A stretch of DNA of 56,211 nt, filler included, from Platydemus manokwari (Eukaryota), in assembly GCA_037951405.1 (NCBI GenBank). It is 4 parts of 4 records of this genome, joined end to end, with 100 filler letters (N's around TTAATTAATTAA, not from the genome) between each part and the next. Parts side by side here need not be neighbours in the genome. Positions count along the whole stretch, not along the records: positions 33,537 to 56,211 come from JBBMOY011222542.1; 3 more parts are not named here. The stretch is one strand, 5' to 3'. The notes beneath the pieces are model-generated. The model saw nothing but the letters and a program-made list of their open reading frames with translations. It made no database searches and had not been told where the DNA came from. The position numbers and the translations under genes were made by a program. Of the stretch, positions 34,026 through 51,062 are shown piece by piece (positions within the stretch are counted from its first letter, which is position 1; each line of letters starts with the position of its first letter).

Positions 34026-35161
34026 ATCGACATAAAGATATAAATTTAATAATATTATCGCCACAAATGAAAACGTTTGATAAATATTTGGATCAACATT
34101 CATCATTGATGAAGAAATTAAAATCTAGAATTCCGAATTCATTACACTAATATGAACCTAATCAATGTTTACCATCCATGTTTGTTGGAACTACATTAAT
34201 CGAACCCTTGAGATATAAAACCAATAACCGTTATAATGATCAGCATCACACCAAACATATTATAATATGATCTAATAGTATTCTCAACTATTACACATCG
34301 AAAATTCCTATTCTATGTTCAACAATCAATTCAACCATGTTTACCATCAACAAATATTTATTATCCATTGTCAAAACATGTGAAACTGGATCGAGTGGAA
34401 TAAATGATTGTCGAGTTATAAATTATGAAATATCACTTAAACTTTCTATGAAAATATTATTTTTAATTTTTAGAATATATAAATTCATATAATACAATAT
34501 AAGCTAAGTTAATGAAAAAATTCTTTTTAAAAGAAGATAACTATGCAAGTATTTATGAATAAAGGTTTCCAAATTAATAAAATTTAAAATAGAAATCTTC
34601 TAATCATAAATAACAGTTATAACTACCAAAATAATTTTAAAAATTTACAAGGATATTTATTTTCATCTCTTCTCGGTTATAATAAACAATCAATTATCAA
34701 TATTAGTTTATCACTTCATTATATGAGATTGTTTGAATGGACTACTTATATATATATAATATCATGATTAGCTAGTAAATTTAATTTCATGGAAGTTAAC
34801 ATCCTCATGTCGGAATTAACTTTGTTGATAAATGGTAACTTATTTATTGACAAAATTAAATTTTATTCTAATTTAAAACTAAATCATTAACAAAATTCAA
34901 TTACAGAGTATATGAAGATAAAATAAAGGAAGTACTCAATGTAAAGTTGGAATATTTTAATTATTAAATCGAAAATGTTGTAAAATTTTAAATATAAATA
35001 AAAAGAAGTGTTTGTGTTGTAATGATCACAGAAAATGTATTCGAAATTTTTATATTTTTCAAAATCAAATGATTAAGTTGACAGAAATAAAATAAATATT
35101 TTTCAATTTAAATAATTTTTAACTTGTGACCTAATGTAAAATCATTGTTTTTTTGTTTCAG

Positions 35162-38035
35162 GTTAATCATTTAGAACATTCCAGGTTCAATGATTTGAGA
35201 CTAAATAAAGAACAAAATCAATTAGATGAATTCGATAATTGGTTTGACAAATGCAGTGAACAAGCGAAAATTGATATCAAGAAGGATATACAAATCCTTG
35301 AACAAATATTACAATCGATTATTCATTATGAAAATGATCGATCAAACATCAAACAAACATTGTCCACAGTTGGCGAATTGACTGAAAAAATATCTTACAA
35401 CGATCTTGGAGATAGTGACAATCGATATATTCGAAATCGATATGGATATATTCAACGAAATAAAAGCAAATCGATAAACAAAGACGGAATATGTTTTGAA
35501 CAACTTTATCACTTAAAAATTATTTTTCTCAGTGAAGAATTTGTTGATTCATTTATTCTCAATGACGAAATAAGAGGATTGAAAAGAGATCTCTGTAATC
35601 TGAAAAGTAAGATTGTTCATATTTTATTGGATCATAAACCATTGATAAATAACACGAAGATAATAATTGGTATAAAAAGCGATTTTACTATGGCAGTAAA
35701 CAAAATAGTGGATTTCTCTCGAAAATATTACGAAATGATTATCTTTTCACATATGAGAGAGATAATAAAGTCAATTGATGAAATTGATTTCTCATTATTA
35801 AGCGATAGATACTATTTTGCACGTGTTTTTTGCATCATTGGTGAAATGTTTCGTGAATGGTTTGACGAGAAAGAACGAAATACTGAGCTGATTTTGGTAA
35901 AAAACTTCAAATATTTTGTCGAAATGAGAAACAAATTGATTCATCACCACGAGAAAATTAGATCTGGATTCGAAAATAAATACCGATCAATCAATCAAAT
36001 GATAATCAATATTGTTAAACATTTGAATAAAGTCATTGATGAAATCCATTTAAGTTGTGATAATCAATGTCATATCAATTTTTCGTATGGCGAAGTTGAT
36101 AAATTTCATAAGGTCGTCAATGAACTGATGAATACATTATTCGAGAGAAATATAGATGCACAAACACGACATGAATTAAATATATTGATAAATAGAGCAA
36201 AAAATCGGTTTAAGAAAATGACAAATAAAACAGATATAAAATCATTTGAAAATCGATTATTAGAACTCGATAAAAAATATCAAAATTATTTGAAGAATTT
36301 GAATACAGACATTGGATACTGTTATCCCACAGAGTTAAATATAAATAATATGAAATCTATTAATGAATTTGGTCAAACACAAATAGCGAGAATAGAAGTA
36401 ATCAATAAAGAAAAAGAATTTGAACGAAAACTTAAATCAAGGAAAGAAGATTTTGAATTTCTTTTGAATATTATCAAATCTAATGTTACAAAAAAATTAA
36501 GACGTAAACAAGGATATATTGTACAATACATAATAGCTGTATTTTCTCAATCTTTAAGGGACATGGAAAATCTGAATATCTGTAACAATGCAAAGGTATT
36601 TAATTCGTCTGAATGTGTAGAAGAAAATCGTACAAAATTTTATTATTTGCTTAAATTTACTTTATCTCCATTGGTTACAGAAAGTAAAAAAATTATAAAA
36701 ATGTTTAGAAATCGCGGTTTAGTGCATAATTTATGGTGTTTTGAGACAGAAAATTTAGATTATAGCATTAACCGTTTTCATAGTTTATATATCCAATTTG
36801 AAGCCATTTATGATGCATTAAACAAAGACAATTTGAAAATAACGGCACAATTCTATTGTGAGATTGCATCGATTTACACAAATATTAACTTGTGCAATGA
36901 AGCCATCGAATTATTTGAGAAAGCACTAAAGCGATTTGATGATTATCCTAATGAAGTTGTACAAATAAATCCCTTGGATTTAGAGAAAGAATATAAAACT
37001 CTATTTCATCTTTCTCCTATTGTTAGTCAAACTAATATATATTTAATTTTTTGTTACTTATCATCTGGGAAATTCGCAAAGGCTTATGATGTTGCCTCTT
37101 CATTGTATAAAAATATAAATCTTGATAATCTTAACTGTGTCAGTAATCAAATATTAGATGACATTTGTGTAATTTTCACAGTATTACTTAGATTCGATAG
37201 AAACGAAGAACGATTTAAACAATTAAATGATAAAATCGAAAAATTGTCATCATCAAACAATTTTGCAAAGTATTTTCTAGCTCAATTATGTTCGAATAGA
37301 GGTGATAAAGCACGAGCTCTAGAGTTATACAAAGAACTAATTAATGGAAATTGTGAAAAATCAATACGATTTGATGCATTGGTAAATTATGTTGAAACAC
37401 AATTATTGAAACACAATGATATGATTCCATGGTCTGACATCAATAAATATTTAGATGAAATAGAAATGCTTTTGAAAGAAAATATTTATGAATTTAAAAT
37501 GAAATTTGCTGGCAAGTTTATGTCAGTGGAAATGATCCCAATAATTTTTAGAACGCTTTGTATCACGAAAAATTTTACAATTTCCATCAATAACTCCCAA
37601 GAAATTGAAAATATTGAAGATCTGTCAAGTCAATTTAAAAAATTTCTCAAAATACATGACAAGTTTGAAAATGATACCGATGTTCTTTTTGTGCCATTTA
37701 TGTTTTATAATTTGCATTTGGGCGTTCATATGAAACGGATATGTTTGGATTTGAAGAGACAAAATATATGGGATGTACAATATTATTACGATTTGATCAC
37801 AGATATTGGTGTGAGATTTCCAGAAAAAATATCAAATTTGAAAACCCAATCATCATCTGTTTTACGCAATTATTTTATTGATGCATTCAATTTTGTGTTG
37901 GCTGATGAAAGGTTGAGTAAAAATATGAAAATAGAACAATTTCAAGAAATGCTGACTTTATTTGAAAATTTCGACTCGGAAATAGCAAATTTTTTGCTCT
38001 CTTGTATAAAATTTAGTATAAGATCACGACAATGA
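35162..38035 (+). CDS. Large exon of an uncharacterised protein with two HEPN-like (R-x4-6-H) domains and C-terminal TPR repeats
   Basis: 2.87-kb stop-free frame in AT-rich DNA. The ORF-track TTG start lies inside a polypyrimidine acceptor (ttttttgtttcag|GTT, phase 0). DUF86/HepT-like motifs YFARVFCIIGEM...EMRNKLIH; second motif MFRNRGLVH. TPR-like AQFYCEIASIYTNINLCNEAIELFEKALK and AKYFLAQLCSNRGDKARALELYKEL. Confidence 0.8.
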   Translation, partial: VNHLEHSRFNDLRLNKEQNQLDEFDNWFDKCSEQAKIDIKKDIQILEQILQSIIHYENDRSNIKQTLSTVGELTEKISYNDLGDSDNRYIRNRYGYIQRNKSKSINKDGICFEQLYHLKIIFLSEEFVDSFILNDEIRGLKRDLCNLKSKIVHILLDHKPLINNTKIIIGIKSDFTMAVNKIVDFSRKYYEMIIFSHMREIIKSIDEIDFSLLSDRYYFARVFCIIGEMFREWFDEKERNTELILVKNFKYFVEMRNKLIHHHEKIRSGFENKYRSINQMIINIVKHLNKVIDEIHLSCDNQCHINFSYGEVDKFHKVVNELMNTLFERNIDAQTRHELNILINRAKNRFKKMTNKTDIKSFENRLLELDKKYQNYLKNLNTDIGYCYPTELNINNMKSINEFGQTQIARIEVINKEKEFERKLKSRKEDFEFLLNIIKSNVTKKLRRKQGYIVQYIIAVFSQSLRDMENLNICNNAKVFNSSECVEENRTKFYYLLKFTLSPLVTESKKIIKMFRNRGLVHNLWCFETENLDYSINRFHSLYIQFEAIYDALNKDNLKITAQFYCEIASIYTNINLCNEAIELFEKALKRFDDYPNEVVQINPLDLEKEYKTLFHLSPIVSQTNIYLIFCYLSSGKFAKAYDVASSLYKNINLDNLNCVSNQILDDICVIFTVLLRFDRNEERFKQLNDKIEKLSSSNNFAKYFLAQLCSNRGDKARALELYKELINGNCEKSIRFDALVNYVETQLLKHNDMIPWSDINKYLDEIEMLLKENIYEFKMKFAGKFMSVEMIPIIFRTLCITKNFTISINNSQEIENIEDLSSQFKKFLKIHDKFENDTDVLFVPFMFYNLHLGVHMKRICLDLKRQNIWDVQYYYDLITDIGVRFPEKISNLKTQSSSVLRNYFIDAFNFVLADERLSKNMKIEQFQEMLTLFENFDSEIANFLLSCIKFSIRSRQ

Positions 38036-39068: not shown

Positions 39069-40342
39069 TTGGGTTGGTGCATAAATTCGTGCGGTTTCAT
39101 TTGTTGCAAAGAAAACACATCAACTTCTTGTTTTAACTGATTTGAGTTATAGACATTCAGCTGAATTATCTATTTAAATCATTTTAGACTAACTTTTATT
39201 TTCATTACCATAATTAAACTGGAGTGTCAGGTAGATAAAAATGAGAATTTCCGGCATCTACTCCTTTTCTATTTCGATCAATATTTAAACGCTGCAGAAG
39301 CCACCAGAATAATTTGTTGCTTTAATGGAGAAAAACCAGTCAGTGAACGAACAGTACACTAATAGAAACTTTGATTTAAACAATGCACCTTGGTCAGGCC
39401 GACCTATTTACTTTGATGAAGATTCTTTAAACCAATTAATTCATGATGACCAGCGTCAATCGACACGAGCGCTTGGACAGGCCATGGATTGTGATCACAC
39501 CACTATTTCTCGACATCTCAAGAAAATGGGAAAAGTTCAAAAAGTTTGGATTTCAAAGAAAAACACAAAAACCAATGTGTTTCTATTTCTGCATCTTTAC
39601 TCATTCGCCATCAGTCTGCTGTGTAGCAACATCAATATTTCCTTTCCAGGATAGTAACAATTGATGAGAAATGGTGCCTGTACGTAAATTTGAAACATAA
39701 AAAAGCTTGGGTAAATCCTCAAAAGCAATCACAACCACGTGCGAAACCCGAAGTTCACCATCGCAAAATCTTGATGTGCGTTTGGTGGAACTAATTTGAT
39801 GTTATTCATTAATAAATCTAGCCCAGAAACCAAACAATCAATGCCGAACTTTATTGTGAACTGCTCAAGCGAGTAAACACTGCAATCAAATCGAAGAGGA
39901 CCAATAAGAAGCAGATACAGTATAACAATGCTCGGCCTCATGTCGCCACAGTGGGCTATTGAAGATCTTGGCTGGTAAGTTCTTCCTCATTCTCCGTATT
40001 CGCACCACTTAGCTCCAACAGATTTTCATCTTTTCCACTCCATGTCGAACCATCTTTTTGGTCTCACATCTGAAAACGAAGAAGTAATAACAAAGTGAAT
40101 TGAAGAGTTTTCGAGCAAAAATCATAAAGCTTCAAACGTGGAATAGACAAACTGCCAGAACGTGGAAGGAAGTGATCGATTGTGGCGGAGAATATCTCAT
40201 CGATTGAAACTGAGATATTTGCTTTTTCTAATGATTTCATAAATTCATTTTGTTATCTGGAATTTATTGCATGGTTTTGGTTGTTGATCAGTATGCATTT
40301 TTCATAATTGTAAAAAACCGTACAAACTTATGCACCATCCAA
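39069..40342 (+). mobile_element. Near full-length (~1.27 kb) decayed mariner, probably mellifera subfamily
   Basis: TIRs ttgggttggtgcataaattcgtgcggttt (39069-39097) and aaaccgtacaaacttatgcaccatccaa (40315-40342). Transposase motifs FRHLLLFYF, SGRP, RIVTIDEKW, NARPHVA and HSPYSHHLAPTDFHLF; multiple frameshifts and stops. Confidence 0.92.
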
Positions 40343-40860: not shown

Positions 40861-41853
40861 TTATTTCAATCTAAAATTAACCATCTTTGCGATCTCAAGC
40901 TCATCTTTCAGATCGACCAGAAGACCTTGGAACGCATTACTAGTTGTGATCCAACTAATATAAAATTCAATCTTTTTACATGCTGGCTTTAAATTATCTG
41001 TGGAATTTTTCAACAAAACTCGCATATCTGAGAGAGCGGCAGCAATGAATTTTCGATCTGTTTTTTCAGCATTCAAAAAATAGAACAAATCATCAACAAT
41101 CAACAATAAAAATTCATTATTAAGAGGAATTTTTGCATTGGAGGCATTAAAAACAAATGATCCGATCACATCTTCCATTGAATTAAATGTAGCTGGTGAA
41201 TTGAGAAAGAGATTTGGGCATATTTCTTGTAGAATATCTGTAATTTCATCAGTAAAATTGTGATGGTCACCATTGTAACGCCTCGTTATGTAAGAGTACG
41301 ATAATATGCAGCTCATCACGATATATCTGATAGATTTATTAGGTGATTTTGAAATTAATTTATCAATCGAAATAATATTCTTTAATAATCGCGGCACCTT
41401 ACCATTAATATTAGAATCAACTTCTTCAACCATATTAAATATCCACCAAGGCTTCCAACATTTAATAAATTTCTTTACTTCTTCTGAATCTATAAATTTA
41501 TAAAATTCTTCTTTTTCTTTATCCGTCAATCTTTCCCAAATATCATCTGTATCATCTAGTGTTAGGTCATATAATCTTTCTTCTAATGATTCAACAGGTG
41601 AAGTTTTTGAAGGGTATTCCTCTGAATTTGCTTGTGATGATAATATATCCTCCATTTTCTCTTTCATTTCTTTAGAAACACGAACTCCTTCTAGTTCTTT
41701 CATACAACACTCTCGATAAAAATCTTCCGAACATTTTATATGTTTTTCAGATTTGTAACAGGGTAATGAACAATAATCTAAGTTACACCTTGGACATTTA
41801 TATTTACCCGGGTTTTTAGTACATATATTACAGAGATTTAAATTTTCATCCAT
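40861..41853 (-). CDS. ZNHIT2: Zinc finger HIT domain-containing protein 2 (single exon)
   Basis: N-terminal zf-HIT CNIC...YKCPRCNLDYCSLPCYKSEKHIKCSEDFY, followed by the ZNHIT2-type motifs IWERLT.KE.EEF, WKPWW and KKIEFYISW. Confidence 0.85.
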   Translation of the reverse strand: MDENLNLCNICTKNPGKYKCPRCNLDYCSLPCYKSEKHIKCSEDFYRECCMKELEGVRVSKEMKEKMEDILSSQANSEEYPSKTSPVESLEERLYDLTLDDTDDIWERLTDKEKEEFYKFIDSEEVKKFIKCWKPWWIFNMVEEVDSNINGKVPRLLKNIISIDKLISKSPNKSIRYIVMSCILSYSYITRRYNGDHHNFTDEITDILQEICPNLFLNSPATFNSMEDVIGSFVFNASNAKIPLNNEFLLLIVDDLFYFLNAEKTDRKFIAAALSDMRVLLKNSTDNLKPACKKIEFYISWITTSNAFQGLLVDLKDELEIAKMVNFRLK

Positions 41854-42663: not shown

Positions 42664-45485
42664 CTAATAATTAAATCGGCAATTTCCCAATCGTTTTTTG
42701 AACAATTTTCTCGTGGATTTTCTTTTAAACTTCTTACCAAGCGAGATAGTTTTGCCAGAATGATGTTTCGAATTTTTCATCGATCGATCTTTGCATGAAA
42801 TCAAATTCTCAATAATTGCAGCGCAATTATTTATTTCATTGATGTTTTGTTGATTTGCAAAATTGCAGCTCTGATTTTCATCATAACTTCCTTTGTCCAT
42901 ATCAGTAGTTTCGATTTCCTCTTCTGACGGTTGGCTGCCTTCTTTTTCTTCTTCATCAGGATTTTCATCATCTTGTTCATCTGGATTCTCGTCACCACTT
43001 TCATCGGCATTATCAATACCACTTTCATCAGCTTCTTTTATTTCTTCATTTGTTTCTTCTTCTACCTCTGCTGAGTTGGGCTCTGAGACCGAAACGTGAT
43101 ATTTTACGCATGACTTTGCAAAATCACTGTCTGCGTCATCATGTATATTTGTTTTGGTATCACCGATGGTGGTATCTGCATTACCAACGTTAATATTATC
43201 TTTTGAGGTTAATTTATCAGTAATACATTGATTTTGCTGATTACTTTCCGGTTTATTATCACTATCAGCTACAACTTCTTCATAGTCTTTAACCAACGCA
43301 CTAATGTTGTATAATGATTCCGTAAATTCACATTCTTCCATTCCTTCACCAATGAACCAGTGAACAAAAGATCTCTTTGAATAGAGCAGATAAAACTTAT
43401 GAGTGAGTCTTTGCCACGCTTGTCCAATTGCTGATGTATTAGCAAGCATTGTGACATTTTTCGTTGTCTGACATATTTCACTTGCAGGAATTGTTGTGGG
43501 TGGACAGATATTTATTCCTACTTTGAATCCCGTCGGACACCAGTCAACAAATTCTATATTTTTATCTCTTTTGATTTCATTCAAAGCAATGTAAACATGG
43601 TATGGACTAACATCACCACGATAAAATAAACTGCAAGACATAAACCGACCAAATGAATGATCAATTTTCATCATTTGATTTTCTTTTTCAAATACTGCTC
43701 TTGTCAAATCACAAACAGATAATTCTTCATGTTCTGCTTTCGATGCCGATAAAACAGGAGCAAAATTAGCTAATGGAAAATGTATTCTTGGATAAGGTAC
43801 TAAATTAGTTTGCAAAACTGATATATCACAGTTCATTACACTTTCAAACCGAACTGACGCAGTGATTGAGCTGGTTAACTGACCTATAAGTCGATTTATT
43901 GTATTGTATGAAGCTTGAGATATAGATAAATATTTGGAACAGATATCATATAGAGCTTCATTATCGAGCAAAAGTCCAACATCGATGTCTTCCATACAAA
44001 AGTGTTCACTTAAAAGACAGTTATATGGTTCTACCATAGCTGTTGATAAAGTTGGAGAGGGATATATGGGCATTTCAATTTTTACCAATTTTGGATAATC
44101 GACTAAACTATCAAATATCGCTGATGTTAAACCTGATCCTGTCCCACCACCAAGGGATCTAAAAATAAAAATTGCCTGAGTATTGGCACCATTTTCTAAG
44201 AGCTTTCTAATTTCATGACTAATAACTCCAAGAAGTAGTTTTCCAACTGTGAAAAATCCTCTAGCAAAATTGCTGGCAGCATCTTCAGGTCCTGAAATCA
44301 GTCTGTCGGGATGAAAGAAATTTCTGTAATTTCCAGTTCTGACTTCATCTAAAAATATTATGTATTTTATTTATTTTTATATTTGAAAATATATAGTTAT
44401 ATAAGTAAAATATAAATAAGTAAAATATAAAGTAAAAGAATTATAAATATAAATATAAATTATAATAACGTGAAATTTTGATGATTTTGGTTACCAGAAG
44501 AATAAAATATATTTTATAGGTGTTAGATTTTGCGCAAAGTTTTTAACTGTAAAATTAAATATTCTAATAACTAAGTTATCAGTAAGATTTCATAATAAAT
44601 TTGTATCGTGAAAAATATTAATCAAGAACAAAGAGTTTCACAGAAACAACATTGAATAAAAGGTGTCCGACTAATTTCAATTGAAGGACATCAATATGTT
44701 TATATGGAACCAAAATTGAAATCACAAAAACCTAGTATACAACCGTGAGTGAATCATGAAATCTAAGATTTGAAATCCTATTTGCTACTGCCGAGAAGAA
44801 TTTTGAAACAAGTTTTATGGTAGAGTGCATTCTGTGATTATCATTGGTTAAACCATCAACCAATTATAAATATTTATATTTTAATGATTGTAGTCGATTA
44901 TAAGCTATAAGTAACCAGTTCAATATTCTAGTTTTATTAAAAACAAACTACGTTTGGTATCATATTTATATGCCAGTTTCAAGATGTGTCTATTGATAAG
45001 ATTGATCTCACTTGTGATGTCAAGGTTAGTAATGAAAGAATGAATGATTATAACCAATCAAAATACGACATGATCAATGATACAATGAGAATTGATTATT
45101 AATTAATTAATTATTCGTTAACAATCCATTATAATTAACATGATAATAAAAAAAATAATGCAAATTCCCATTTACATCGATAGGATATATACATAGGATA
45201 AAAATATTCAAATTACCTATTACTGTTGCCTCTAGATCAATGAAAAGATTTCTCGGAACAAATTTACCAGAATGAGAATACGAAAAGAAAGTGTCTAGGC
45301 ATTCTATATGGAGGCTTGGTTCTTTCAGGTCACCGCTTTCGTTTATACCATGTTCAGTGGCAAGCAATTCCCAAATAGAATTTCCCATTTGAACTCCAGC
45401 TTGACCGATATGCAAGGAAATGATTTCCTTCTACAATTTAATTAATATTTTTCAATAATAATGAAGCGATTATCAAACATACCAT
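42664..45485 (-). CDS. TUBA: Highly divergent alpha-tubulin with ~200-aa C-terminal extension; 3 exons (45485-45483, 45430-45217, 44348-42664), 633 aa
   Basis: ATG|gtatgt intron directly after the start codon and a phase-1 intron at TVI-G|AT, both typical animal alpha-tubulin positions with GT-AG ends and an in-frame join. Motifs [57 protein letters not shown]. Confidence 0.92.
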
Positions 45486-48647: not shown

Positions 48648-51062
48648 TTATGTCTTTAATACATCTTTTCGTTTCTTTGCCATCTTTTTAATCATTGCCT
48701 TTTTTTCATTTTCAATACCAGTTTTCCTCAAATTTCCAATAGCTCCTGCAGCTGCCAGTTGTAATTCAGTATTTTCTGATCCAATCATGTTTATAAGCAG
48801 ATGTGAAACACCAGCTTGGTTCATTTCACGACTATTATTTGGATCTTGACTCAATTTGTACAATGCCCTAGCAGCAGAAGCATGGACTAATACTTCACTT
48901 GAACGGAGAAAGTTCACCAATGGAGTTATGACATTGGCTCTTCCAAATTGTTCCCTGTTATCTCTATAATCACAGCAAACGGCTATAGCTTCTGACAATG
49001 ACTGCCTCAACTTATCATTGTCCGTTTTCACTAATCTTGATAACAATCTTACAACTCCGAGATCACTTAATATGGCTACATTATCACTCTCTTTTCCCAG
49101 TTCAGCTATTAGTGCACAGGCTGCTGAAAGAATATCTTCATTTGTTGATTCCAGTTGCTTAACTGTCAATTCCAAACTGCCGACCAATGTTTTAATGAGA
49201 CTTCCAGAATGTTCCGTATGAGTACAGCATGATTTAAGAGCCTCTAAAGCAGCCGCTACAACAAACGCTTTAGAATGCTTTGTTATTGCAAATAAAATAG
49301 GTACACCGTCTAATTTATTTATTTCTGCCATACATTCTGGGTTCTTAGCACATTCTTTCAAAACGCCAATCGTATTAAACAATAAATTTTCTTCGTCCAT
49401 TTGTAAAAGTGAGATTAATTTTTTCGTAGAATTGTTAGCATTAATCAGTTTTCTCCCTTCTTCTAATTTAGATATTTCATAAAGAGCACCGGTGACATTT
49501 ATCATTATCTTTTCTGCCTTTTCCAATTTATTAAGAGTGTGGGAAGCCGATATTTGAGGCCGTAAGTAAATTTGAAACGACTTAGGTAATGTATCCAATA
49601 TTTTCAATAATAAATTCGTACCATTTTTCGTGTTGACTTCAACTGCATTAATTGGACAGAGACAACATTTCCATATCGCTCCAGTGATAGCATAAAGAAG
49701 TTTCTGATCGCCTTCCGGATCGAGATGAACTATCAGTACTTCAATACCACCAAGATTTCTCACTAAAGTTCGAGTTTCAGAATCGACTGCGCATTTGAAA
49801 ATTGTTAATCCACTTTGGGTGCGTAACCATAAATTGGGGCTATTCAAGTGTTTTATCAAAATTGGCATCATTCCTTCAGTTCTTATAGAAATCCGATAAT
49901 AGAGTTCAGATGCACATTGTTGTAATGTTCCAATAACTGGTATAAGAATATTTTGGTTATCTTTTCTCAAAAGTTTTGCTAGTAGAGGTATTACTCCTGC
50001 TCTTCGCATACACACTCGATTTCTTTTTGATTTACTTACTTTCCACAAAGCTGTAGCGGCGTTCTGAGTAACGGAGACTTGCATGGAATCCCTTTGAGCA
50101 GTACTAGGACAGTTTGTTTGTGTTGAAGAATTTGATGATTTATCTATATCCAGTAAGTAAACTAAATGACCTATTCCGTCAAATCTTCGAATGTTTGAGC
50201 GAGCTCTTTTGAATACAGCTAATTTTGCTAATGTATCAGCTGCTAAACACTGGAGGTCAGCATTGTGATGTTTTAAATTTTCTACGAGTGGCTGTATACC
50301 ACCTAGAAAGGTAACATTTCTGCAATAAAATATGATGTTAGCAAGCTCTCTTATAATTTTCAAAGATCCTATTCGACATCTCATATCATTTGCTGTTAAA
50401 AGATTCAATAATAATGCTATTCCATCACTGTCTTCCATTGCTCTCATACATTCCGGTGACTTGAGCTTGTTATTATTCATATAACAGAGACATAAGAGTG
50501 TTGCATGGACATTTCCTATCCTTATGTATCGCAATAATTTTGTCAACTGCCAGTATATAGGGCTTATTTGTACATCTGATTTTTGATAAATAATCGACTC
50601 TAGGAAATCTAAATGTTTTGCCTCTTCATCTTCAGACTCTGAACTACTATCAACATCATCATATGTTTGTTGACTATTGGTCTGTTTATATAAACGTTTA
50701 TGAAAATTCTTCATTCTTGTCACAACATCACTATAGTAGCCAACATCATATTTTGCTTTGACTCGTTTCATTATTTTCTCATAAGATTTAAACGTATTTT
50801 CTCGACATTCCAAACTGGAATTAGGAACGGTTTTCGAATAGAGATATGTATTGTATTTCGAATATTTCGATTTGGCACTGGTATTCAATTGTTTCGTGTT
50901 ATCAGGTTTCATGGCATTATTTTGGTTAGTTGTTTGGGCATTGAATTGGATGTAATTTCTACTCAATTTATCCTCAATATATTCATCAATTCTATTAAAC
51001 ATCTGTTGTCTTTTTTCATCTTCATCATCATCAACAATGACATTTGATTGATAGGTTGGCAT
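48648..51062 (-). CDS. ODAD2: Armadillo-repeat protein, ARMC4/ODAD2 (outer dynein arm docking; gudu)-like, single exon
   Basis: 804-aa ORF. An acidic linker (DSSSESEDEE) precedes YWQLTKLLRYIRIGN.HATL, LIPVIGTLQQCASE.YYRISIRTEGM, TGAIWKC and RALYKLSQDPNN, all ARMC4-characteristic, within tandem ARM repeats. Confidence 0.85.
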   Translation of the reverse strand: MPTYQSNVIVDDDEDEKRQQMFNRIDEYIEDKLSRNYIQFNAQTTNQNNAMKPDNTKQLNTSAKSKYSKYNTYLYSKTVPNSSLECRENTFKSYEKIMKRVKAKYDVGYYSDVVTRMKNFHKRLYKQTNSQQTYDDVDSSSESEDEEAKHLDFLESIIYQKSDVQISPIYWQLTKLLRYIRIGNVHATLLCLCYMNNNKLKSPECMRAMEDSDGIALLLNLLTANDMRCRIGSLKIIRELANIIFYCRNVTFLGGIQPLVENLKHHNADLQCLAADTLAKLAVFKRARSNIRRFDGIGHLVYLLDIDKSSNSSTQTNCPSTAQRDSMQVSVTQNAATALWKVSKSKRNRVCMRRAGVIPLLAKLLRKDNQNILIPVIGTLQQCASELYYRISIRTEGMMPILIKHLNSPNLWLRTQSGLTIFKCAVDSETRTLVRNLGGIEVLIVHLDPEGDQKLLYAITGAIWKCCLCPINAVEVNTKNGTNLLLKILDTLPKSFQIYLRPQISASHTLNKLEKAEKIMINVTGALYEISKLEEGRKLINANNSTKKLISLLQMDEENLLFNTIGVLKECAKNPECMAEINKLDGVPILFAITKHSKAFVVAAALEALKSCCTHTEHSGSLIKTLVGSLELTVKQLESTNEDILSAACALIAELGKESDNVAILSDLGVVRLLSRLVKTDNDKLRQSLSEAIAVCCDYRDNREQFGRANVITPLVNFLRSSEVLVHASAARALYKLSQDPNNSREMNQAGVSHLLINMIGSENTELQLAAAGAIGNLRKTGIENEKKAMIKKMAKKRKDVLKT

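Follow-up and report, generated by a model that had tools for sequence, protein, structure and literature searches.

Can an alpha-tubulin dispense with the residue by which it switches on GTP hydrolysis in its neighbor? In canonical microtubules, alpha-E254 projects into the exchangeable site of the beta-tubulin beneath, completes the catalytic site for the GTP bound there and activates hydrolysis, and dynamic instability depends on this glutamate. The question is raised by a 633-codon gene with three exons on the minus strand (45485..42664) of a 56,211-nucleotide stretch of DNA from the flatworm Platydemus manokwari (GenBank assembly GCA_037951405.1). This stretch, referred to at its full length as the window, joins four parts of four genome records with filler between them, and the gene lies in the part taken from JBBMOY011222542.1 (positions 33,537 to 56,211). 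A first-pass annotation had described the product as an intact alpha-tubulin with valine in place of E254 and had suggested that its incorporation would create stable GTP islands in microtubules, e.g., in sperm or ciliary structures. We consider it moderately probable that the gene encodes a functional, divergent flatworm alpha-tubulin isotype, associated with sperm, which binds GTP and folds normally and would be unable to activate the GTPase of its neighbor, so that its lattice would remain GTP-bound and stable.

The assignment to the alpha-tubulins is based on homology searches with exon 2 and exon 3 separately. The Pfam Tubulin domain (PF00091) was detected in both exons (2.3e-14 in exon 2 and 7.9e-28 in exon 3) and Tubulin_C (PF03953) in exon 3 (3.4e-37). 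In HMMER searches exon 3 matched solved alpha-tubulin chains with an E value of 2e-137, all top PDB matches being alpha chains, and the window protein nests among the alpha-tubulins in a tree with a beta-tubulin outgroup. The overall identity to canonical alpha-tubulin amounts to 53-56%, and the alpha-tubulin fold is beyond question because the identity to solved alpha-tubulins is about 55%. The N-site GTP contacts G10, Q11, D69, E71, D98, S140, G143-146, E183, N206, Y224 and N228 are all kept; the sole exception is N101, which is S in the window protein and N in 12 of the 18 members of the flatworm clade described below, throughout which G143-G146 are invariant (site table). The loops that hold alpha-tubulin's own GTP are 90% identical to the canonical ones and 94% conserved in the clade, and the alpha-specific insert between strands S9 and S10 (residues 359-372) is present at full length and without gaps (PPTTIPASEICQTT versus PPTVVPGGDLAKVQ). 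Two hallmarks are missing. The GTPase-activating pair of loop T7 and helix H8 is incomplete, with D251 present and valine at position 254, and the short acidic tail with a terminal tyrosine is replaced by a tail of about 197 residues of mixed acidic and basic composition, which happens to end in Y. Judged from its sequence, the window protein has the ancestry and the fold of an alpha-tubulin, yet in catalytic terms it is not a canonical one.

The substitution itself was confirmed by translation and by HMMER, in agreement with the first-pass annotation: exon 3 aligns without gaps to residues 243-264 of TUBA1D/TUBA1A around T7 and H8, with Val (codon GTT) opposite E254 and Asp opposite D251, and a change from GAA or GAG to GTT takes two base changes. 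The unbroken reading frame, the canonical introns and the intact GGGTGSG signature claimed by the annotation were likewise reproduced. In the first hit list, 254 is E in 163 of 163 canonical alpha-tubulin copies, and all 14 copies with V belong to the clade of the window gene, which argues that Val254 is not due to chance. The site table lists V254 and D251 in 18 of 18 clade members each, V254 is invariant in an alignment of 17 sequences, and positions 252-255 are free of acidic residues throughout the clade. V254 was found in Fasciola, Fasciolopsis, Echinostoma, Calicophoron, Clonorchis, Opisthorchis, Paragonimus and Protopolystoma as well as in the cestodes Echinococcus, Taenia, Hydatigera, Hymenolepis and Schistocephalus. 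Altogether, independent genome projects have yielded more than 18 orthologs with the residue of the window protein, so that the loss of E254 is conserved across flatworm classes. In these flatworms, E254 is retained by the alpha-tubulins outside the family, both canonical and divergent.

Flatworms supply all of the closest proteins apart from UniParc and Logan sequences, which group with them. Trematode orthologs show 63-65% identity (Fasciola hepatica, F. gigantica, Fasciolopsis, Echinostoma, Calicophoron, Clonorchis, Opisthorchis, Paragonimus), the monogenean ortholog of Protopolystoma 64%, cestode orthologs 57-60% (Echinococcus, Taenia, Hydatigera, Hymenolepis, Rodentolepis, Schistocephalus), and the UniParc and Logan relatives 59-81%. 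In a maximum likelihood tree of 55 rows (quick search, rooted with beta-tubulin), a 23-row clade with a support of 100 in the Shimodaira-Hasegawa-like approximate likelihood ratio test (SH-aLRT) unites the V254 sequences, their sister group, in which position 254 is I, V or A, and one further A254 sequence; none of its members has E. Within it, a Neodermata subclade (SH-aLRT 99) separates the cestodes from the monogenean and the trematodes and mirrors the species tree, which indicates that the family arose before the main flatworm classes diverged. The window protein stands outside this subclade, which places its host outside the parasitic Neodermata, and is the sister of P0051 (support 98; 81% identity). 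A second search with the clade alignment returned the same set, mostly fused canonical alpha-tubulin models, and no new taxa. When a trematode ortholog served as the query of a third search, proteins of other trematodes came up at 86-89% identity, along with two additional Schistocephalus members. No Schistosoma ortholog was found among the 8000 best word-sharing candidates of this search, an absence that is only suggestive, and the family may have been lost in schistosomes, whose sperm are atypical.

Some lineages contain more than one member of the family. Run SRR33002330 yielded three distinct paralogs without E254 (L003, L004 and L005), of which P0069 and P0067 have V254 and P0125 has I254 together with a one-residue deletion after position 255; the family has therefore expanded in some species. 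A paralog of Schistocephalus solidus within the clade (P0317, A0A0X3PUU5) has Thr254 and a signature changed to SGGTGAG. Another S. solidus entry of 638 amino acids (P0095) consists of a canonical alpha-tubulin that runs on into the beginning of a second tubulin-like sequence of very high divergence (SIFLHIGGAGVQVGSQFW...) and probably represents two adjacent genes merged by the gene predictor.

Selection was estimated by the method of Nei and Gojobori. The closest pair with DNA, which is the one measurable ortholog pair, gave a ratio of nonsynonymous to synonymous substitution rates (dN/dS) of 0.09 at a dS of 1.3, well below the value of 1 named in the annotation. In all comparisons with the window gene, the synonymous sites are saturated (proportion of synonymous differences, pS, above 0.75) at a proportion of nonsynonymous differences (pN) of 0.21-0.30; this points to strong purifying selection, with no exact ratio for the window gene itself. 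The gene is under strong purifying selection. These values also bear on the trivial explanation that the locus is a pseudogene or a neutrally drifting duplicate, or that codon 254 reflects a sequencing or assembly error. Only one public run, which is not registered as RNA, contains this DNA, and one of its contigs spans the gene with 0 differences; since this run is probably the source sample, the agreement is not independent, and the cDNA side of the read check named in the annotation returned no RNA run for the species. Several findings speak against an artifact: the 633-codon frame is unbroken in DNA of about 30% G+C, the same residue recurs in the orthologs of independent genome projects, pN is much lower than the saturated pS, transcripts of orthologs and a testis marker are known, and two base changes are required for the exchange of E for V. 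We regard this explanation as effectively refuted, and Val254, to judge from the alignments, as a fixed trait of the family and not as an error or the mark of a pseudogene. A second contig of the same run, scored as of the same length and diverged, matches only two short conserved stretches of the gene, positions 43325-43347 and 43775-43797, which lie 427 bases apart, and is a diverged tubulin paralog from another place in the genome.

What the loss of E254 would mean can be gauged from engineered proteins. Human alpha-tubulin E254A blocks GTP hydrolysis, E254Q and E254N are hydrolysis deficient, all with D251 intact, and microtubules of the E254Q mutant proved stable (PMC7018511, PMC11893814). 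The window isotype should behave like these mutants. It would pair with a beta-tubulin and enter the protofilament, whereupon the GTP of the neighboring beta-tubulin would stay unhydrolyzed and the lattice containing the isotype would remain in the stable, expanded GTP state without stabilizing proteins. Alternatively, the isotype could be an ordinary dynamic one in which D251, a water network or another residue still activates hydrolysis and E254V is of little consequence. The invariance of D251 in the clade fits such a scenario, as does the existence of many divergent alpha-like tubulins without E254, some of which may have found other solutions. In the human mutants, however, hydrolysis is lost despite an intact D251 (PMC7018511, PMC11893814), and no clade member offers an acidic residue at 252-255 as a substitute. 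We therefore consider retained hydrolysis quite improbable.

The changes in the family are not confined to a single residue. T7, H8 and H10, which together make up the alpha face in contact with the next dimer's beta-tubulin, are only 38%, 56% and 33% identical to canonical alpha-tubulin, respectively, and 65-82% conserved within the clade. The M-loop, 65% conserved in the clade, is 65-71% identical to the canonical one and keeps H283 both in the window protein and in the clade consensus. Three acidic residues have been lost from H12, the H1-S2 loop that contains K40 is three residues shorter than the canonical loop, and the canonical acidic tail is gone: in the trematode and cestode orthologs, DYEE is followed by only a few, non-acidic residues, without a poly-Glu stretch or a tail of the EEY type. 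The extension of about 197 residues in the window protein is not conserved in the orthologs, although it is very unlikely that it would have stayed open without constraint in DNA of about 30% G+C.

This pattern of divergence from the canonical surfaces, conserved within the clade, suggests a conserved but different partner surface. Together with the lost acidic residues of H12 and the lost acidic tail, it would fit an isotype that acts outside the ordinary lattice, be it as a cap or terminator of protofilaments, e.g., with a changed minus-end face of alpha-tubulin that blocks the addition of subunits, as a non-polymerizing dimer with beta-tubulin, or in a non-microtubule polymer, e.g., within the central core of the 9+'1' axoneme. 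The broad remodeling of the alpha face means that a noncanonical polymer or a role off the lattice has to be reckoned with. On the other hand, the conserved M-loop with its H283, the full-length S9-S10 insert and an overall identity to canonical alpha-tubulin that is typical of polymerizing divergent isotypes all speak for a subunit that is built into microtubules, and we judge a function outside the lattice to be unlikely.

The site of a stable, GTP-bound lattice can be narrowed down by the expression of the orthologs. Three public runs contain contigs of 1.5-2.1 kb in which relatives of the window gene are encoded at full length and without introns, and one of these contigs ends in a library adapter; they look like spliced transcripts, i.e., the orthologs appear to be expressed. 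The ortholog of F. hepatica (THD23391.1, UniProt A0A4E0RB94, gene D915_006002) is a marker of the testis cluster in a spatial transcriptome of the adult fluke, with an area under the curve of 0.916 and a log2 fold change of 1.52, and was detected in 98.9% of the testis spots versus 54.2% of the other spots (PMC11484910, Supplementary Data 2). The testis expression proposed by the annotation is thus realized in this fluke. A published testis-specific "tubulin alpha" of F. hepatica, D915_001685, was considered as the ortholog and rejected, as it corresponds to A0A4E0S3J4. Nor is D915_006002 one of the five alpha isotypes published for F. hepatica, all of which have GGGTGSG and whose mutual identities are 72-95% (PMC3820024). 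According to published descriptions (PMC4230190 and others), the sperm of digeneans have two 9+'1' axonemes together with parallel cortical microtubules arranged in bundles. Given the testis enrichment of the fluke ortholog, the microtubule arrays of sperm are a likely site of use, and the isotype would be expected in these long-lived arrays of flatworm sperm, i.e., in the cortical bundles and/or the 9+'1' axonemes.

A more far-reaching version of this scenario is that entire categories of sperm microtubules, be it the cortical singlet bundles, the 9+'1' axonemes or both, are made of a hydrolysis-incompetent alpha-tubulin, with a permanently GTP-bound, expanded lattice that owes its stability to its composition and not to microtubule-associated proteins (MAPs) or modifications, and with a T7/H8/H10 face that has co-evolved with a dedicated beta-tubulin partner. 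We put this forward tentatively and with more doubt than conviction. The GTP islands of the first-pass annotation presuppose a sparse incorporation of the isotype, and entire microtubules composed of it would fit the present evidence equally well. While every prediction of the annotation at the sequence level held, its functional core is derived from the human E254 mutants, and the interpretation is supported in part.

Several observations weigh against a sperm isotype that locks the lattice in its GTP state. The alpha face toward the next beta-tubulin is so heavily changed in T7, H8 and H10 that canonical longitudinal contacts cannot be assumed. Owing to the loss of acidic residues from H12 and to a tail that is either very short (in the parasites) or long and unconserved (in the window protein), the binding of motors and MAPs must differ as well. 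RNA data for P. manokwari were sought and no RNA run was found. In F. hepatica, the testis enrichment is not exclusive, given the detection of D915_006002 in 54% of the non-testis spots, and several canonical-type tubulins are also testis markers. No Schistosoma ortholog was found among the 8000 candidates scored with a trematode query, and the gene is accordingly probably not needed for sperm in every flatworm. Finally, for all members of the family, dimerization, entry into the lattice and the loss of hydrolysis are predictions from sequence and from human mutants, and the same applies to the site of action in P. manokwari.

Compared with canonical alpha-tubulin (TUBA1A/1B, PDB 7rro, 3j8x), the window protein shares the fold, the domain pair, the N-site GTP pocket, GGGTGSG, D251 and the S9-S10 insert; it differs in Val254, in the remodeled T7, H8, H10 and H12, in the K that replaces R2 of the MREC start, and in the unconserved extension that takes the place of the acidic tail. 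The engineered human mutants E254A, E254Q, E254N and E254D (Roostalu 2020, PMC7018511; LaFrance 2022, PMC8764682; Estevez-Gallego 2025, PMC11893814) change the same catalytic carboxylate with D251 intact and give GTP-bound, stable microtubules, as predicted for the flatworm isotype, but they are single-site changes in an otherwise canonical protein, whereas the flatworm change is natural, ancient and hydrophobic and is accompanied by many co-conserved changes of the interface. D915_006002 and other "Tubulin alpha chain" entries of parasitic flatworms are orthologs of the same clade (59-65% identity, V254) that were annotated by homology alone and, unlike the window protein, are short-tailed, with about 440 residues.

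The closest published parallel, a natural alpha isotype without a GTPase-activating residue and with an unusually long C-terminal tail, is the alpha3-tubulin of coccidians (Toxoplasma, Hammondia, Neospora, Besnoitia, Cystoisospora). A 2023 review describes it bioinformatically as lacking D251/E254 and having a long tail, and proposes that it stabilizes polymers (PMC10056924). In alpha3-tubulin, D251 is replaced by T, H or Q stands at 254, a Glu is shifted to 253, and the MREI start contains an insertion, whereas the flatworm family has kept D251 and has no acidic residue nearby. A conserved replacement of residue 254 (V, I, A or T), as in alpha3-type isotypes, is found in all 23 clade representatives and in further members. 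From the taxonomy and the different residues, an independent origin is expected, and the two families would have arisen in parallel. Among the 150 best representatives at 50% identity (P0121-P0268), a survey showed that 45 of the 147 aligned sequences lack E254 (15 with Asp and about 30 with a non-acidic residue, of which one or two are beta-like); the residues at this position are Q, D, V, I, A, H, G, L, S, Y and K, and several of these proteins also lack D251. This suggests that the loss of E254 recurs, largely unremarked, among divergent alpha-tubulins. No mention of the missing Glu254 of the flatworm family was found in the open-access papers and preprints. Beta-tubulin has a lysine at the equivalent of position 254, as seen in the representative P0169, and because this Lys254 is non-catalytic, alpha-tubulin's own GTP is never hydrolyzed. 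With respect to T7/H8, the flatworm isotype would thus make the interface between dimers behave like the one within the dimer, although, unlike beta-tubulin, it is clearly an alpha-tubulin that is nested in the alpha-tubulins and has alpha-specific motifs.

Table 1. Coordinates of the alpha-tubulin gene, its key codons and neighboring reading frames in the window
Feature	Position	Strand	Basis
Exon 1: ATG start codon only, followed by the donor GTATGT	45483..45485	-	inferred from sequence
Intron 1: 52 nt, GT..AG, phase 0 after codon 1	45431..45482	-	sequence
Exon 2: residues 2-72 and first base of the next codon	45217..45430	-	translation; Pfam Tubulin E 2.3e-14
Intron 2: 868 nt, GT..AG, phase 1, between VI and DEVRTG	44349..45216	-	sequence
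Exon 3: remaining tubulin body, long C-terminal tail and stop codon	42664..44348	-	560-codon open frame
GGGTGSG tubulin signature (T4 loop), intact	44131..44151	-	sequence, translation
Codon GAT, Asp251, kept	43825..43827	-	sequence, alignment
Codon GTT, Val at alpha-tubulin position 254, replacing the catalytic Glu	43816..43818	-	sequence, translation, alignment
C-terminal extension of ~197 residues after DYEEVVADSD: acidic low-complexity part, then basic end (KKFKRKSTRKLFKKRLGNCRFNY)	42667..43257	-	translation, ortholog alignment
ODAD2/ARMC4 ortholog, single 804-codon open reading frame (ORF)	48648-51062	-	E 5.5e-133 to PDB 7rro_H7; Arm repeats in Pfam
330-codon ORF with N-terminal HIT zinc finger	40861-41853	-	PF04438, 3e-12
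Short ORF, probably a transposon remnant	39325-39654	+	HTH_38 match 5.7e-5, under Pfam cut-off
Uninterrupted 960-codon frame in DNA of 25-27% G+C	35153-38035	+	weak TPR matches, all under cut-off

The structure of the gene (Table 1) is in line with an old origin. Exon 1 is inferred to consist of the lone ATG because an in-frame TAG at 45433-45431, directly 5' of exon 2, blocks an upstream extension of this exon, and because splicing gives the start MKEIISLHIGQ, comparable to the MREV/MKEVISIHVGQ starts of the orthologs. Exon 2 encodes the GQAGVQ nucleotide loop, the shortened H1-S2 loop and DLE (D69/E71), and across intron 2 the join ATA G/AT GAA GTC yields I-D-E-V, corresponding to the canonical VIDEVRTG. 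Both intron positions, i.e., after codon 1 and between VI and DEVRTG at codon 76, are those of vertebrate alpha-tubulin genes, which points to an old duplicate and not to a retrocopy. With respect to the neighborhood, the ODAD2/ARMC4 gene, which encodes a subunit of the outer dynein arm docking complex and is hence an axonemal gene, is located about 3.2 kb upstream of the tubulin gene on the same strand, and the ORF with the HIT zinc finger about 0.8 kb downstream of the tubulin stop codon, also on the same strand. The short ORF on the plus strand resembles the N-terminus of a mariner/Tc1-type transposase.

To our knowledge, hydrolysis-dead microtubules have so far been studied only via engineered human mutants or GTP analogues. 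If the proposed function holds, an alpha-tubulin family that spans the phylum, is under purifying selection and lacks E254 would represent a natural experiment, which would show how cells use microtubules with a GTP lattice, which partner proteins read them and how the interfaces have co-evolved, and the testis enrichment supplies a tissue in which to look. The family would also be a ready-made reagent, optimized by evolution, for structural work on the GTP lattice. It is present in major parasites (Fasciola, Clonorchis, Opisthorchis, Paragonimus, Echinococcus and Taenia) and strongly unlike the tubulin of their hosts, so that it would be relevant to the reproductive biology of parasitic flatworms.

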